Shown: positions 3,614-51,660 of the stretch, piece after piece
How positions within the stretch are numbered: position 1 is the stretch's first letter
How the letters are laid out: every line of letters starts with the position of its first letter
Assembly: GCF_006345805.1 (NCBI RefSeq)
Contig: NW_021832232.1
Coordinates: 186,001-250,000, forward strand
From: Octopus sinensis
Lineage: Eukaryota
Length of the DNA stretch: 64,000 bases
Direction of reading: 5' to 3'
The notes under the pieces: model-generated
What the model was told of the DNA's origin: nothing
Seen by the model: only the letters and a program-made list of their open reading frames with translations
Databases searched by the model: none
Position numbers and translations under genes: made by a program

Positions 3614-4912
3614 CTACTTAAAAAGACCATTCCAATGATTGGCAGATTTCTGATCATACTTTTTGCATAAGCATATGTAGAACAACGACACTACTCCACT
3701 TGCAACCAGGAAAAAGTATTTGTACGTAGATTTGACTTGATTATTTGGTGCATCGTTTTGGAAATGCTCAAACCATTCTTTTAGACACAAACTCAGGAAG
3801 ATGGCTGTGAGCACTGTCGTATAAGTAAAAAATATTCCAATTTTCTGAATTACAAAATTTGTTGCAATCATTTTTCTTCTGTATTTCAGGGAGATGAGTG
3901 CACACAGAAACGAAATGAGTATTGCTAGTGACATGGGTAGAAAGGTGAAATACAAAAGGAGATCGGAGTTCTTTAGGTGGCACAAATCCATTCCACTGTA
4001 CATATAAACAGCCCCAGAATGGACGGTGGCTAACAACCAGACTCCGAAATGCAGGAATATTTGGAAAGAAGATTCATAGTGGGGATTTACATGAAAGAAA
4101 TAACAGAAATATGTCGCCAGCCACCACAAATTCCCCGCGTGAAGGAAAAAATAAACGAGAACGAACCTGAGACTGCAGTAAGTCGTCGAATTAGAAGGGT
4201 TGTCGAGAATATTGACGACCAGACCAGTAGCCATAACAGCGTAGCAACAAGTCATAAACAAAATGCAATGCTCAATGTAAACGGAGGACATTGAGTGAAG
4301 GAAAGAGATGGCGATTGCGAGGAATATTGCAATACAGATTGTCAGCAGCAACTCAATTCCTTGGAGTATTTTTAGAAAATGATTCAATTTTCCAATAATG
4401 AGATTGCTGTTTGTGTCTGATTTGTTATTGGAATTTTGTATTTCATTCTCCGGAGATTTGGCTGTGGTGCTTTGGATTGATATTTTTTCGTTGGAGTTGA
4501 ATGATTTATTCATTTTGTCCACACAGACGTAGTGGTCTGCTTCAACGCTGGGAAGTGACAAGCAGTCCATATTTGAAAAAAAAGATTTCCACTTATTAAT
4601 GGCAGTGGGATTCTTGTTTGAACATTTTTGATTAATTCTTAAACACATTTCTCGGCAAGGATAAACTGGGAACTGGTAATTTGTGGCACAGATGGGGTAT
4701 AATAGAAGACAAGCAAACAACACACTTTCTTGGTCACATTCCACATTTAGTTGAGTCAGACTCGTTATCAGTTCAGTGCTGAATTTATTTGGGAACATTG
4801 TAAGGTTGTATCCAAACGTTTGACATATTTTATTGTCCACAATTCGACAGTTATTCTTGATGTATTCTCTGTCACTTAGAAAAGTATAGAAGAGAAGGAT
4901 AATTACTAACAT
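3614..4912 (-). CDS. Compact Frizzled-family receptor, single 432-aa ORF
   Basis: Signal peptide, then a cysteine-rich FZ domain (C..GYNLTMFPN..C..FAC.LLYPIC..PVYPCREMC..C..W..C..LP..C), seven hydrophobic segments (VYFFLHAGNLWW in TM3) and a KTxxxW-like KSANHW after TM7. Confidence 0.88.
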   Translation of the reverse strand: MLVIILLFYTFLSDREYIKNNCRIVDNKICQTFGYNLTMFPNKFSTELITSLTQLNVECDQESVLFACLLLYPICATNYQFPVYPCREMCLRINQKCSNKNPTAINKWKSFFSNMDCLSLPSVEADHYVCVDKMNKSFNSNEKISIQSTTAKSPENEIQNSNNKSDTNSNLIIGKLNHFLKILQGIELLLTICIAIFLAIAISFLHSMSSVYIEHCILFMTCCYAVMATGLVVNILDNPSNSTTYCSLRFVLVYFFLHAGNLWWLATYFCYFFHVNPHYESSFQIFLHFGVWLLATVHSGAVYMYSGMDLCHLKNSDLLLYFTFLPMSLAILISFLCALISLKYRRKMIATNFVIQKIGIFFTYTTVLTAIFLSLCLKEWFEHFQNDAPNNQVKSTYKYFFLVASGVVSLFYICLCKKYDQKSANHWNGLFK

Positions 4913-38639: not shown

Positions 38640-39900
38640 ATAAACTCATGTAAACAATAAACCAAAGAAATTAAGCACACCTACCTATATATCCCCTGCT
38701 GAAGTTGCAACGGTGATTACCAGTACGAAATCACCCCTATCCTGTGGACCAGACTTGATTCCAACAACCTTGCTAAAGCACCTTGGTCCCATCGGAGTTG
38801 ATGCAGTGACAAACTTTTTCAACTATTCCGTTAACCAGAATTAAATACCAAATATATGGAAAAATTCTTTTATACCCCTAATTCTTAAGTCGGGCCGACC
38901 GAAGAACGTCCCCTCCTCCTATAAACCCATCTCACTTTTATGTTCAATTGCAAAGATTTTTGAAAAACTAATTATCGATTTGATCACCCCTATTCTCCCC
39001 CTTACATACATCCAACATGGTTTCAGGAGTAATTTCTCTACCTCGACAAATCTTAGCACATTAACCCAGTTTATAATGGAAGGTTTTGCAACTAGACCTC
39101 ATCTCAAATCAACTCAAAAAATATTTGTCTTATCCATCGATTCTAACATAAAACTCTGGTTTTCGAATTTTCTCAGCGGAAGGAGAGGGCGGTGTATGCC
39201 TGAGTGGAATCAAATCAATCTCAAGATTGCTTCTAAATGGAGTTCCCCAAGGCTCCCCCCTTTCTCCTGCTTTATTCAATTTATACCTATCCGACATTCC
39301 CTACCCTGAAATGGAAGACTCAATCATTCTCGCCTATTCTGACGACCTACTCATTGGATCACGTGATCAAGATATCTCGAAAGCTTCCAAAAAAGCATAA
39401 GATCTCTTATTACAAATTTGAACTTGGCTATATCAAAACAGGATGAACATCTCTCCGAAAAATCGTCCACTATCCTATTTACGTCAGACAAGAGACTTGG
39501 AATACGTAATGTTTATCTTTTTCTTGACAACGAAAAGATCTCATTCACGAAGAAACCTAAAATTCTGGGGGTCACTTTTGACACCCACATGTGTTTTACT
39601 GCCCATTTAGAGAAGGCCATCGAATCCAGTCAGAGAAAGATTGGACTTGGCGGACTAAAGAAACCATTCCCGGCTCTCGGCATTCTCTACAGACAATTCA
39701 TCGAACCGACAATTGGCTATGCCTGCGCCCCATTGGGAATTAATTTTTCATGGTCCAACCGCCTTAAAATTGAGACTACATTATGCCGAGCTGCGGCTAG
39801 CATAATGCATATTTTAATTTGAACAATATTATTCCAAATCCGCTTGACCACCTAATAAAGAAAGAGGGAAGAGCTTCTTAGCCATTCAACAGGACCAACT
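38640..39900 (+). mobile_element. Decayed LINE reverse transcriptase, related to the fragment at 40-1110
   Basis: LILKSGRPKNVPSSYKPISLL, QHGFR, VPQGSPLSPALFNLYLSDIP, YSDDL and PKILGVTFD across frameshifts. Confidence 0.85.
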
Positions 39901-46620: not shown

Positions 46621-47395
46621 TTTAAATTTTAGGGATATATTTCCTTATTAGAGATGTTAAAAAACTCAATTAAAGCAGCAATTTGTCAATTTCCTCGATT
46701 CTACTTGTTTTAAATTTACAGTGAAGAATTCTGTGATTGTGAAAATTGGTATAATTATTTTCAATTTTATTTTAAAGTCAAAAACATTTTCCGCTTTAAA
46801 GTCATAGTGACAAGTACTTTTTGAGGTTATTTCTTGGCGAATACCATTTCTTTACACGAGGCCACAGCTAATCTTTAAGTACGCGTATTGCTTCTTTACA
46901 AATTTATCTATTTTCTCGAGCCAAAATGATTCCAAATCTGAAAGACCAATTTAATCAAGCATTGAATAAATAGATCGACTGAGTTTAGTTTAGTTCTCGA
47001 TAATCTTTCGATTTTGAATTTCCTTATTAATATTTATGAGTACATTCCACTGAATTACCTAACTGGATGTGTCTTGTATTACTGCCAAATTCATTTGTTT
47101 GACCATTCCTCAATAAATAGCAATTTTGGCGGATTTCACAAAATACTCCTCCAGTCAATTTTGACGCAAATTTCAAATAATTTTTTCTCATGATTATATA
47201 GCGTAAAAAAGATCATAAACTATTTCTCAAATATTAAAAAACAAAGTTTAATGCTAGCTAGAATAAGTGACTAAAATGATAGTCAAAAGCATAAGGGTTA
47301 GCTCAACGACGCAACCCTGCGTATTGAATGGTAGTTTCCGCGGATCAGGGCGACCAAGATCATACACTAAATAACACAATTAAATTTAATAATTT

Positions 47396-48666
47396 TTATT
47401 TTGTCACATGATCGAGCATTTCAATATAAAAAATGTTCTTTTTACCAACCCTCAACAAATCTCCGTGACACAACAAGCGAGAACTCAGCTGAGATGAACT
47501 CAGTTTATCTCCGTTAACTCTTATACCTCCAGCATCAGCAACACGTACAAGACCACTCTCTCCATAGTGATTTGCGAGACGATTTTGAATGAATTCACTC
47601 ACACTCATTTGTCGTTCAATCACACATTTTATGGAATCCAGTTTGGGGTTACGATTAGAAAATGTCTCCACAAAATAATCCAATTCCTCGTTGGCAACTT
47701 GGTCTCCGTGATACCGGCGAGTAATTTCCTTAGCTAACATCAATTTGGCATCACGTGGGTTCCCTCCCTGTGTGATTTGGTTTTCAATGTCCTCAATTGT
47801 AGTGAGGGACATGGTTGTATAAACACGCAAATATCGGATTATGTGTTTGTCGTCTACTCTCATAGCCATACCAAACATGTCCCTTGGACTGAGATCAATC
47901 CCAATGTAGTTCCCCAGTGACTTGCTCTGTTTGGAAGCAGAAAGTCCTAACCCCGGGGTTATTGGAGTGAGGATGAGTGTCTGTGGTCTCTGGTTGTGCC
48001 TAGTCTGTAAATGACGGGCCATGTCCTCGTTAAAGTGTTGATCTGAGCCGACAACAGTAATATCACTCCCGAGTACGACGGAATCATATCCCTGAGGAGT
48101 GGATATATCAGTTCACTCAAAACAATCTCCTTAGACTGCTCCATCCTCTTCTGAAACATATCTCGTTCGATGACTCTGGCATGTGTCACCATCGAGGTTA
48201 GTCGAATAAAGTCAGGAACAGTCATTTTCTTGTACCATTCGGAGTTCCGATGCACACGCAACTTGGAAGAGTTTGTCAGAAGAATCTTGTCAATTTGTCT
48301 CAGATACGACAATATTGTATCCTCAAGACAGTCTCCGCCACAACGAGAGTTTAATTTGTCGGTAGGATCACCGACCTTTGTGGTGAAATCTCCGAGAACG
48401 AGATCTACTGCATGTCCTCGTTCTTGGAATGCCCTTAACAGCCACAGATTCACGGCATGTCCCAAATGTAGAGAAGGGCCAGTTATATCAATTCCATATT
48501 TCACGTTCAAAGAATTTCCACTTTCGAGTTTGGCTTGTAATTCTTGACGTGTAAACAATCGGTCGATATAACGGGAATTTTCTGAAATAAACGAAGAAAA
48601 TTTATTGGAAATTGGGCGTGTGTGATGTATAATAACTTTGTTCAGAAATCGAACAGTTTTCCACAT
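47396..48666 (-). CDS. tyrS: Intronless bacterial type-2 (TyrZ-like) tyrosyl-tRNA synthetase with N-terminal presequence; 1-nt deletion near 48094 splits the ORF
   Basis: KYGIDITGPSLHLGH (HIGH), GDFTTKVGDPT, YPLL/QGYDSV, GSDQHFN, KQSKSLGNYIG (KMSKS) and a C-terminal S4-like domain (GGIRVNG..RVGKK). Confidence 0.9.
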
Positions 48667-49345
48667 GTTTAATAAAACACGTCCAAATTACTTTACTTAA
48701 TTTAAATTTTCGATATTAATTTTTTAAAAATTAATTATCTTATGAGGTTAAATAAGATTCCTGTTTTGCGTTATTAAATAATTCCAGTAAAGCCATTTAA
48801 AAGGAGATCGACAGGTTAATTTATGAAGAATTGTTCACTAACAGAGAAATATAATAATCAACGTAAAAAGAAATGAGGACAAATCTAGAGGGCAGATCGC
48901 GTTGAGATATTTTTTTTCTTTATGAAAACCAAAAAATTCAGTATTTTCAGATTTACAAAAGTAAGTCATAATAAATGGAATCTATAATTATTAAAAAAAT
49001 CGCATTTAACTACAATACTGGGAAAAATAAATAAATATAACCAATTGATGATCGAGAAAGGACAGTTAAAAAAACTACCATTTAGAAAATATTTCCAAAT
49101 CAAATAAATTCAGATGTAAAAATGGAAAAAGTTTTTCTCAAAGAATGGGAGGAAGATCAAATTATCTCTACCTTATGTGGCTCAAATAAACATGGGTTTT
49201 ACTCCAATTCTTCATCAAAATAATGTCTTACTATCAATTCCGCAAGTCAGCTAAAGACCATTTAGCCTTTATAAGAAAGAACTGATTTATTAAAAAGAGA
49301 AAGAAATTAAACGTAGACTCATTCCTAAGCATTATAACTAGAAAA

Positions 49346-49913
49346 TCAAACAGGGACGTAATACTCCCCTTCAACCAACAATCTGGTGACTTCCTTGGGA
49401 GGCTTGTTATCGACAGTGCAACCAATGGACATGCACGTGCCTTCCAATTACTCAAACTGACTACCCAAAATTTCCTTGACTACACAAAACAGGGAATTCG
49501 ACAGACTCTTGAAACGCATTGAACGAGCGATTTCTATTACGTCATCGAACGTGATATTCCCGTTGTGTTTTATATTCTTGACTTTCTTCCGGTCTCGGGG
49601 GGTTTCCTTCAGAGCCTAGGCACATTTTTTGTATGAGGGACCTTCATTATTAGTGCAGAAGAGGAGGGGATGATCGTCATGGTGTACTGACGGTTCTGAA
49701 TTCGCAGTTGGACTGCTATTTTTATTCCTTTCCAGTCAGTTGTCGACTTTGCAATGTCTTCGGCCACTTTCTTGGCTGGAAGTCCCAGAGGGGCTATTCT
49801 TGGGGCAATTGTAGAGCTTGCGCCAATTTCACCACCGACTACTCGTAGTTTGACTTGACTATCACGGAGTGAAATATACCAATATGAACTGCAGTTGGAT
49901 CGAACTTGGACAT
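49346..49913 (-). CDS. RPL12: 60S ribosomal protein L12 (uL11)
   Basis: Not in the ORF track. Spliced: [70 protein letters not shown]; three introns of 24-26 nt. Confidence 0.95.
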
Positions 49914-50952: not shown

Positions 50953-51660
50953 TCAAGTGATAACTATTCCGTGAAAAACTGTCTTTGAAACACGGGAATC
51001 AACAATCGTTGGCCACACGAAATAATCAATTCTATCTCGAGTGGGATCAGCTGTGGAATGACGAACATGGCGCATTGCACAAAACTCTTGATCAGAATAT
51101 TTATAAGCAAAAAAACGGTGGCACACCTTTAATCTCCAACTGAATCTAAGGCACCTCCTGATGAATTCCCTCAACTGCAAACAGTCTCCGACTTGCTTAA
51201 AATCCACCAAACTAATCAACAGTTTGTCAGCTACAGCCTTTTCGAGTTTTTCCAAATTAAAAACTTTGGAGGTATCAGTTAGAAAGGACGTGATATGTTG
51301 CTGTAAGGACTGGATCTCCTTATTTTCTTCGATTTGCCAGTTAGTAGAAACTGGTAGATACAACAGCTGTTCTAAACTTGTCATGATCCCTTCGAGGTGT
51401 TGAACAGTCAATTTATGAGACAGAAGTAAGATCGTGATCATTATTTTGTCCTGGAGTGCAATTTGACCATCCAGTGCGGGCATTTTTCTCAGTCCATCCA
51501 TCACTGTTGCACGTGAAAAATTATACAAATCACGATATTCGTCCACGACAGTAAAACAAGATCGAGAATTCATTTGCATTGATGTTTTTCTTTGATAAAT
51601 ATCCTGAGGTTGTTTCCTGTACGACTCATCCATACAACTTATTTTTCTGATGCTTCCCAT
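50953..51660 (-). CDS. MIEAP (SPATA18-like) C-terminal domain protein, single ORF
   Basis: VVDEYRDLY..R..MDGL, KIMITILLLS, LREFIRRCLRFSW, HVRHSTADP..IDYFVWPTI..VFHGIVIT, matching the MIEAP domain pattern ending in VxT. Confidence 0.72.
   Translation of the reverse strand: MGSIRKISCMDESYRKQPQDIYQRKTSMQMNSRSCFTVVDEYRDLYNFSRATVMDGLRKMPALDGQIALQDKIMITILLLSHKLTVQHLEGIMTSLEQLLYLPVSTNWQIEENKEIQSLQQHITSFLTDTSKVFNLEKLEKAVADKLLISLVDFKQVGDCLQLREFIRRCLRFSWRLKVCHRFFAYKYSDQEFCAMRHVRHSTADPTRDRIDYFVWPTIVDSRVSKTVFHGIVIT

Follow-up and report, generated by a model that had tools for sequence, protein, structure and literature searches.

A 64,000-nt stretch of contig NW_021832232.1, deposited as Octopus sinensis DNA and called the window below, carries on its minus strand an intronless gene for a tyrosyl-tRNA synthetase (TyrRS) of the bacterial type-2 subfamily. 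The surrounding DNA is almost certainly nuclear DNA of a dicyemid mesozoan that was co-assembled into the octopus record. We favour, as somewhat better than evenly likely when its parts are taken jointly, a reading in which the gene is an old bacterial transfer into the dicyemid nucleus, its product is likely the mitochondrial TyrRS, and the single frameshift that interrupts it more probably reflects an error in the consensus than a lesion of the gene.

A TyrRS of the bacterial type-2 subfamily

Two overlapping open reading frames (ORFs) on the minus strand make up the gene at 47396-48666, one of 235 amino acids (47959-48666) and one of 208 amino acids (47396-48022). Merging them across a 1-nt deficit yields a conceptual protein of 423 amino acids, which we refer to as TyrRS; the frames fuse seamlessly at ...SELIYPLL / (Q)GYDSVVLGSDITVVGSDQHFN... 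once one base is added at 48093-48096. The motifs KYGIDITGPSLHLGH, YPLL-GYDSV, GSDQHFN and KQSKSLGNY can be read in the sequence. In an alignment of the window TyrRS with 13 diverse bacterial homologues (A1), the protein is colinear with its bacterial counterparts throughout, starting at about residue 30, with no intron-sized insertion, and the gene is therefore intronless. HLGH, GDFT, YPLL(Q)GYDS, GSDQ.FN and KQSKSLGNY all occupy invariant columns of A1, the residue Q192 at the frameshift being assumed. A first-pass annotation, made from the letters alone, had quoted such motifs, the frameshift and an N-terminal peptide, all of which are present as given, and had placed the intronless gene 680 bp from an intron-containing RPL12 gene; RPL12 does end 679 nt upstream of the TyrRS start codon.

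Residues 51-335 match the Pfam family PF00579 (tRNA-synt_1b) with an E value of 6e-53, and residues 39-417 score 247 bits against the NCBIfam equivalog TIGR00234 (tyrS), whose cutoff is 114 bits, which identifies the protein as a bacterial-type TyrRS (class Ib). The Pfam S4 model found no match in a Pfam search of the protein. Residues 340-420 nevertheless align with the C-terminal S4-like domain of the bacterial homologues, with G408 and K409 invariant, and are modelled at pLDDT 78-90. An AlphaFold model computed on A1 has a mean pLDDT of 81.7, with disorder confined to residues 1-19 and two loops.

Comparison with solved structures places the protein in the type-2 subfamily. The type-2 enzymes of Acinetobacter baumannii (6bqy; sequence score ∼210 bits, 37–38% identity in Foldseek), Thermus thermophilus (1h3e; 192 bits, 29–30%) and Helicobacter pylori (6byq; 176–181 bits, 35%) score 176–211 bits overall, as compared with at most 86 bits for the type-1 enzymes of E. 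coli, Bacillus, Staphylococcus, Neisseria and Mycobacterium (∼20–24% identity), 64–71 bits for fungal mitochondrial enzymes (∼19–23%) and 64–65 bits for human mitochondrial YARS2 (2pid; 20–21%). Foldseek ranks the structures in the identical order: Thermus TyrRS gives the best matches to the model, full-length over 439 aligned columns, and the human mitochondrial enzyme comes 48th. The window gene is thus a bacterial type-2 TyrRS of the Thermus/Helicobacter/Acinetobacter kind, as the first-pass annotation had proposed, and its score, identity and Foldseek rank against human 2pid show that it is not a YARS2 orthologue.

The motif reasoning behind that earlier proposal stands in part. The motifs are present, but GFDPT...LH.GH, which had been taken as a mark of type-1-like enzymes, also occurs in solved type-2 enzymes; in our alignments the types are separated by K(M/Q)SKS versus KFGKT and by GxDQxFN versus GSDQWGN (type-2 versus type-1). 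The window TyrRS shares with 1h3e, 6bqy and 6byq, its best matches in sequence and structure, the domain order Rossmann catalytic, helical, S4-like C-terminal and the signatures HIGH, K(M/Q)SKS, YP.(L/V)QGYDS and G.DQ.FN. It differs from them in an identity of just 29–38%, in having KQSKS in place of KMSKS, in its basic, acid-free N-terminal extension, in lying in an animal genome with the codon usage of its host, and in the one frameshift of the assembly.

Constraint, the frameshift and the public gene model

Alignment A1 contains 102 positions that are invariant among the 13 bacterial homologues, and the window TyrRS keeps 84 of these (82%) at an overall identity of ∼44%; in a leave-one-out test, each bacterial sequence keeps 94–100% of the invariant positions. 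The 18 alterations are mostly conservative, the radical ones being G103D, V135K, E137R, L211H, D259L and K267M. This pattern of retention points to purifying selection over a long time, combined with accelerated evolution. Both halves of the gene (191 and 232 codons) are free of stop codons, and the reading frame is interrupted by one lesion in total, the base that is missing at 48093-48096.

The most serious alternative is that the gene was acquired horizontally but is now a very recent pseudogene, in which the 1-nt deletion is genomic and another enzyme, for example a retained YARS2, carries out mitochondrial tyrosylation. Several observations speak for this and weigh against the reading that we favour. 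The one copy available, from a single assembly, has the frameshift, and the missing base is not part of a long homopolymer. Conserved coding sequence nearby, ∼4.7 kb in all (6PGD, 1.45 kb; SERCA, ∼2.75 kb; RPL12, 0.49 kb), is free of frameshifts, which means that indel errors are not frequent in this region. The radical substitutions at otherwise invariant positions could reflect relaxed constraint. Finally, no transcript was found, and an intact second copy or orthologue of TyrRS did not appear among the homologues in the protein collection. That absence is uninformative, because RPL12, which serves as a control, has no relative above 64% identity among database proteins and so shows that the collection lacks dicyemid sequences. 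Neither half ORF had its exact product on record, nor did an intronless ORF looked up as a control, and a DNA pattern spanning the frameshift, with 0 or 1 extra base, had no match in JGI metagenome contigs.

Against decay of the gene there are also the presence of one lesion only, two halves that are stop-free despite the AT-rich genome, and the retention of most invariant positions and all the catalytic motifs. We regard a recent pseudogene as unlikely, although it is the alternative to be taken most seriously. A consensus error is the likelier source of the frameshift, and probably the true one; this judgement is drawn from prior odds, because exactly one lesion in a gene constrained for so long would be a rarer event than an indel left over in a long-read consensus, the organism being a minority component of the co-assembly. 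The Octopus sinensis assembly is, we assume, PacBio-based.

The sole near-identical protein in the databases is P0001, ‘tyrosine--tRNA ligase-like [Octopus sinensis]’, a Gnomon model encoded on VCDQ01002185.1. It begins with RPL12 exons 1 and 2, then skips ∼1.1 kb and resumes at an internal acceptor immediately ahead of NSRYIDRL, so that the natural TyrRS N-terminus is lost; further on, it splices out 33 residues, VTHARVIERDMFQKRMEQSKEIVLSELIYPLLQ, as a 100-nt ‘intron’ and thereby bypasses the frameshift. We rejected both of these introns. The 100-nt intron would remove 33 residues that are conserved in bacteria, including YPLLQ, whereas the introns of the host genes are 22–26 nt long. The same length range argues against a fusion of RPL12 to TyrRS through an intron of ∼1.1 kb, and RPL12 runs on through two more exons to an AATAAA of its own. 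The protein on public record for this locus is an artefact, a chimera of RPL12 and TyrRS.

A probable bacterial origin and a putative mitochondrial role

A search of 5.8 billion proteins returned 6637 homologues at E ≤1e-10, the best of which, after P0001, are bacterial and 43–47% identical to the window TyrRS. Nearest among them is P0002, whose surroundings are densely packed with bacterial genes, ndk and heptosyltransferase genes being next to it. A scan of GTDB with one genome per species (185,579 species), in which relatives were retrieved with the pattern KQSKS[LI]GN[YF], found bacteria only, at 39–46% identity, the best being from Chlamydiales, Simkaniaceae, Francisellaceae, Alphaproteobacteria, Bdellovibrionales and Patescibacteria metagenome-assembled genomes. 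The clade of uncultured bacteria that comprises P0002, P0003 and the metagenome-assembled genomes just named (KQSKS, YGVDVT) resembles the window TyrRS in its 43–47% identity, in KQSKSLGNY and GSDQ.FNE, and in full-length colinearity, but has acidic N-termini and shorter branches, and no clade has support as sister to the window TyrRS (bootstrap ≤44%). When 140 sequences are grouped by neighbour joining (200 bootstraps), the tree gives the window TyrRS a long branch (mean distance 1.03, as compared with 0.71). A grouping with Saccharibacteria/Patescibacteria in this tree was rejected as a pointer to the donor, its support being weak (≤44%) and long-branch attraction its probable cause.

The composition of the gene is that of its surroundings. 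Its GC content is 42% and its GC at third codon positions 41%, within the 39–60% of host genes, and its flanks have 26–31% GC. Relative synonymous codon usage correlates with that of the host genes at r = 0.60, which is higher than the value for any single host gene against the rest (0.28–0.46), whereas the correlation with genes of the bacterial homologues is weaker (0.23–0.48, for AT-rich ones) or negative. Host genes flank TyrRS on both sides, with RPL12 and an ORF for a MIEAP domain upstream and more host genes downstream. Scans for bacterial promoters and terminators near the gene gave signals no stronger than chance, and scans there for tRNAs and Rfam families found nothing above chance.

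Horizontal acquisition from a bacterium, which the first-pass annotation had put forward, is the best reading of these data and well supported, because the gene is embedded in animal DNA, next to RPL12, has host-like codon usage, and all its close relatives are bacterial. The transfer looks old. Literature searches for horizontal gene transfer in dicyemids, or of a mitochondrial TyrRS in Metazoa, gave nothing relevant.

The N-terminus of TyrRS has a composition unlike that of its bacterial relatives. Its first 28 amino acids carry a net charge of +5 and no acidic residue, and neither value is reached in 119 bacterial homologues. The KYG.D motif is preceded by 55 residues, as compared with a bacterial median of 38 and a 90th percentile of 43. 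The basic, acid-free extension of ∼28 amino acids described earlier is thus correct in its peptide, its charge and its lack of acidic residues over 28 positions, but relative to the bacterial median the extension amounts to ∼17 amino acids. The AlphaFold model has residues 1-19 at pLDDT <50, that is, predicted to be disordered, with the fold beginning at about residue 21. The hydrophobic moment of the N-terminus is not distinctive with respect to the bacterial homologues, and it tells against a targeting function that some of those in A1 have N-termini equally long.

By what is established of tRNA-Tyr identity, bacterial TyrRSs do not charge eukaryotic cytosolic tRNA-Tyr but are compatible with the bacterial-like tRNAs of organelles. 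Use of this TyrRS in mitochondria, which the first-pass annotation had inferred, is therefore plausible and would be its most sensible function, to judge from the composition and predicted disorder of the N-terminus. The mitochondrial minicircles of Dicyema encode trnY (PMC6543705), so that a mitochondrial TyrRS is required. Human YARS2 (2pid) and Neurospora CYT-18 (1y42) would be the functional counterparts, as nuclear-encoded, imported, bacterial-like class-I TyrRSs that charge mitochondrial tRNA-Tyr, presumably the same job, but they belong to the type-1-like subfamily and score 64–71 bits, with 20–23% identity, against the window protein.

Organellar aminoacyl-tRNA synthetases (aaRSs) of mosaic or transferred bacterial origin are documented in eukaryotes, mostly in protists and plants, and they share with the putative case described here a bacterial gene in a eukaryotic nucleus to which a targeting peptide has been added. 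We propose tentatively, and with rather less than even confidence, that the dicyemid replaced or supplemented its ancestral type-1 YARS2 with the transferred type-2 TyrRS, which would now serve an aberrant minicircle mitochondrial genome. In the reading that we favour, which does not depend on this proposal, the gene would have passed long ago from a bacterium to the nucleus of a dicyemid that parasitizes the kidney of Octopus sinensis, where it would have acquired host codon usage and flanks of the host type while staying intronless. It would have retained the HIGH and KQSKS motifs, the residues that bind tyrosine and, at the C-terminus, the S4-like domain that binds tRNA, and gained the basic, acid-free N-terminal extension through which the protein may be imported into mitochondria. 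There it would charge the minicircle-encoded tRNA-Tyr in the two steps of class-I enzymes, formation of tyrosyl-adenylate followed by transfer to the 3′ end of the tRNA.

A different source or a different use of the enzyme is improbable. The gene might derive from the organellar TyrRS of another eukaryote or from older spiralian inheritance, and the low bootstrap support for any sister (≤44%) and the long branch of the window TyrRS leave some room for such an indirect origin; however, all listed relatives with a named source and all GTDB hits are bacterial, and the solved mitochondrial TyrRS structures of animals and fungi are distant. A non-mitochondrial or moonlighting role, which we group with it, runs against the incompatibility with cytosolic tRNA-Tyr that is expected of a bacterial-type TyrRS. 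Less probable still is bacterial contamination or a chimeric join, with the gene coming from a bacterium in the octopus or its parasite. The gene is intronless and of bacterial type, and the record stems from a sample of mixed organisms. Nevertheless, such an artefact is very unlikely because the composition is host-like, the flanks are those of the host and bacterial signals are lacking: only the 1.27-kb ORF is bacterial, near RPL12 within a 552-kb contig and between AT-rich, host-like flanks, its codon usage matches the host, and its N-terminal extension is basic in the eukaryotic style. Moreover, no bacterium among the proteins and GTDB species searched is more than 47% identical.

The host DNA and other elements of the window

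Positions 37396-62096 of the window are 100% identical to contig VCDQ01002185.1 (552,228 bp) of assembly GCA_006345805.1. The genes around TyrRS have exceptionally short introns. The first-pass annotation had noted micro-introns in the housekeeping genes of the region, and those examined, RPL12, 6PGD and SERCA, bear this out. Eleven introns in RPL12 and 6PGD could be mapped exactly, and all are 22–26 nt long with GT-AG ends. Removal of the eight 6PGD introns (22–25 nt) leaves a single 482-codon ORF that matches residues 2-481 of sheep 6PGD, and in SERCA each change of frame coincides with a gap of ∼20–25 nt, over residues 82-990 of SERCA2. Most 1-kb windows have a GC content of 26–47%, with values up to 51%, which fits dicyemid GC. 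For the spliced RPL12 protein, the best mollusc sequence reaches 59% identity, a divergence far beyond that expected of a ribosomal protein from a cephalopod.

Among animals, introns shorter than 30 nt have been reported only in myxobolid myxozoans and Dicyema (PMC13644364), and the median intron of Dicyema sp. is 27 bp (PMC6543705). Dicyema japonicum inhabits O. sinensis and has a repeat-rich genome of 67.5 Mb with 36.7% GC (PMC6736024). Because of the 22–26-nt introns, the GC content, the divergent RPL12 and the cephalopod-derived sample, the window is almost certainly dicyemid nuclear DNA and not that of the animal named on the record. The assignment is indirect, being drawn from intron, GC and RPL12 features together with literature values. 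That TyrRS truly belongs to Octopus sinensis, as the title of the record and the NCBI protein name have it, is scarcely credible, since all genes checked in the window have introns of a size known in animals only from dicyemids and myxobolids (PMC13644364), RPL12 is remote from that of molluscs, and O. sinensis harbours Dicyema japonicum (PMC6736024).

The coordinates of the features are collected in the table. The whole window (1-64000) is gene-dense and has the look of DNA from a dicyemid parasite under an Octopus sinensis annotation, which by implication would hold for the 552-kb contig too. In 6PGD, the first coding exon and start codon were not located, and the conserved ORF starts directly after an in-frame stop, so that a further micro-intron probably lies upstream of it. 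Two inverted arrays enclose an ORF for an integrase-zinc-finger-like protein and another for a Tc1/mariner-type transposase, and the interval 23367-25814 is probably one transposon with repeat arrays as its termini. Two other ORFs look by eye like fragments of a non-LTR retrotransposon reverse transcriptase, with no Pfam match for the two pieces checked.

Table. Positions of TyrRS, its parts and other elements within the 64,000-nt window
Feature	Position	Strand	Description	Evidence
TyrRS N-terminal part	48094..48666	-	codons 1-191, with the presequence-like extension, the HIGH motif and the Rossmann fold in its first half, through YPLL	ORF, translation, Pfam/TIGR matches, A1
TyrRS C-terminal part	47396..48093	-	in the -1 frame, from (Q)GYDSV through the stop codon; contains GSDQHFN, the KQSKS loop, a helical domain for anticodon binding and the S4-like domain at the C-terminus	translation, A1, AlphaFold, Foldseek to 1h3e
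Frameshift site	48093..48096	-	one base absent between Leu191 and Gln192 codons; reads ...CCACTCCTCAGGGATAT..., expected ...CTC CTN CAG GGA TAT...	
Presequence-like N-terminus	48583..48666	-	MWKTVRFLNKVIIHHTRPISNKFSSFIS; net charge +5, no Asp/Glu, Ser/Thr-rich	
HIGH signature HLGH, residues 67-70	48457..48468	-	H67, G69 and H70 in invariant columns	A1
KMSKS-type signature KQSKS, residues 246-250	47918..47932	-	K246-S250 invariant; variant common to nearest bacterial relatives	A1
AATAAA hexamer over TyrRS stop codon	47395..47400	-	possible poly(A) signal, followed by ATTAAA at 47385-47390	weak in AT-rich DNA
RPL12 (uL11)	49346-49913	-	4 exons, 163 aa; GT-AG introns 49854-49879, 49616-49641 and 49441-49464 (26, 26 and 24 nt); AATAAA at 49291, 55 nt past stop	
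MIEAP ORF	50953-51660	-	intronless, 235 aa, directly upstream of RPL12; full MIEAP (mitochondria-eating protein) domain	E 3e-27
6PGD	21125-22767 (∼21.1-22.8 kb)		8 introns	
SERCA	∼15.7-18.9 kb			
Animal-type ORF	20256-20612		CARD domain	
Animal-type ORF	3614-4912		Fz domain, then membrane region	
Animal-type ORF	11674-13016		DHHC and ankyrin repeats	
Inverted array, first	23367-23554		21-nt unit, ∼9 copies, TTTTCGAATCAATATAATAAT	
Inverted array, second	25623-25814		reverse complement of the first, ∼9 copies	
Integrase-zinc-finger-like ORF	23795-24268	-	between the 21-nt arrays	
Tc1/mariner-type transposase ORF	24520-25411	+	between the 21-nt arrays; helix-turn-helix (HTH) and DDE_3	
Tandem array	31217-31439		57-nt unit, 3.9 copies, 84% identity; two TGACGTCA palindromes (CRE-like) per unit	
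Reverse-transcriptase-like ORFs	40-865 and 38980-39822		non-LTR retrotransposon type	by eye

At least 552 kb of the Octopus sinensis reference assembly would, on this assignment, be parasite DNA labelled as octopus. The chimeric P0001, without its 33 residues of the catalytic core, and the parasite contig could mislead analyses of gene content or horizontal transfer in cephalopods. The transfer of a bacterial aaRS into a eukaryote is of a kind already known; its occurrence in an animal is unusual. If the proposed replacement or supplementation of YARS2 is true, such a substitution of a bacterial aaRS in animal mitochondria would be undescribed, as far as literature searches show. If the gene is functional, it would offer a rare and clean case of a bacterial housekeeping enzyme recruited to mitochondrial translation in an animal, in a lineage whose mitochondrial and nuclear genomes have already undergone extreme reduction, and it would bear on the freedom with which mitochondrial aaRS/tRNA pairs can be swapped.

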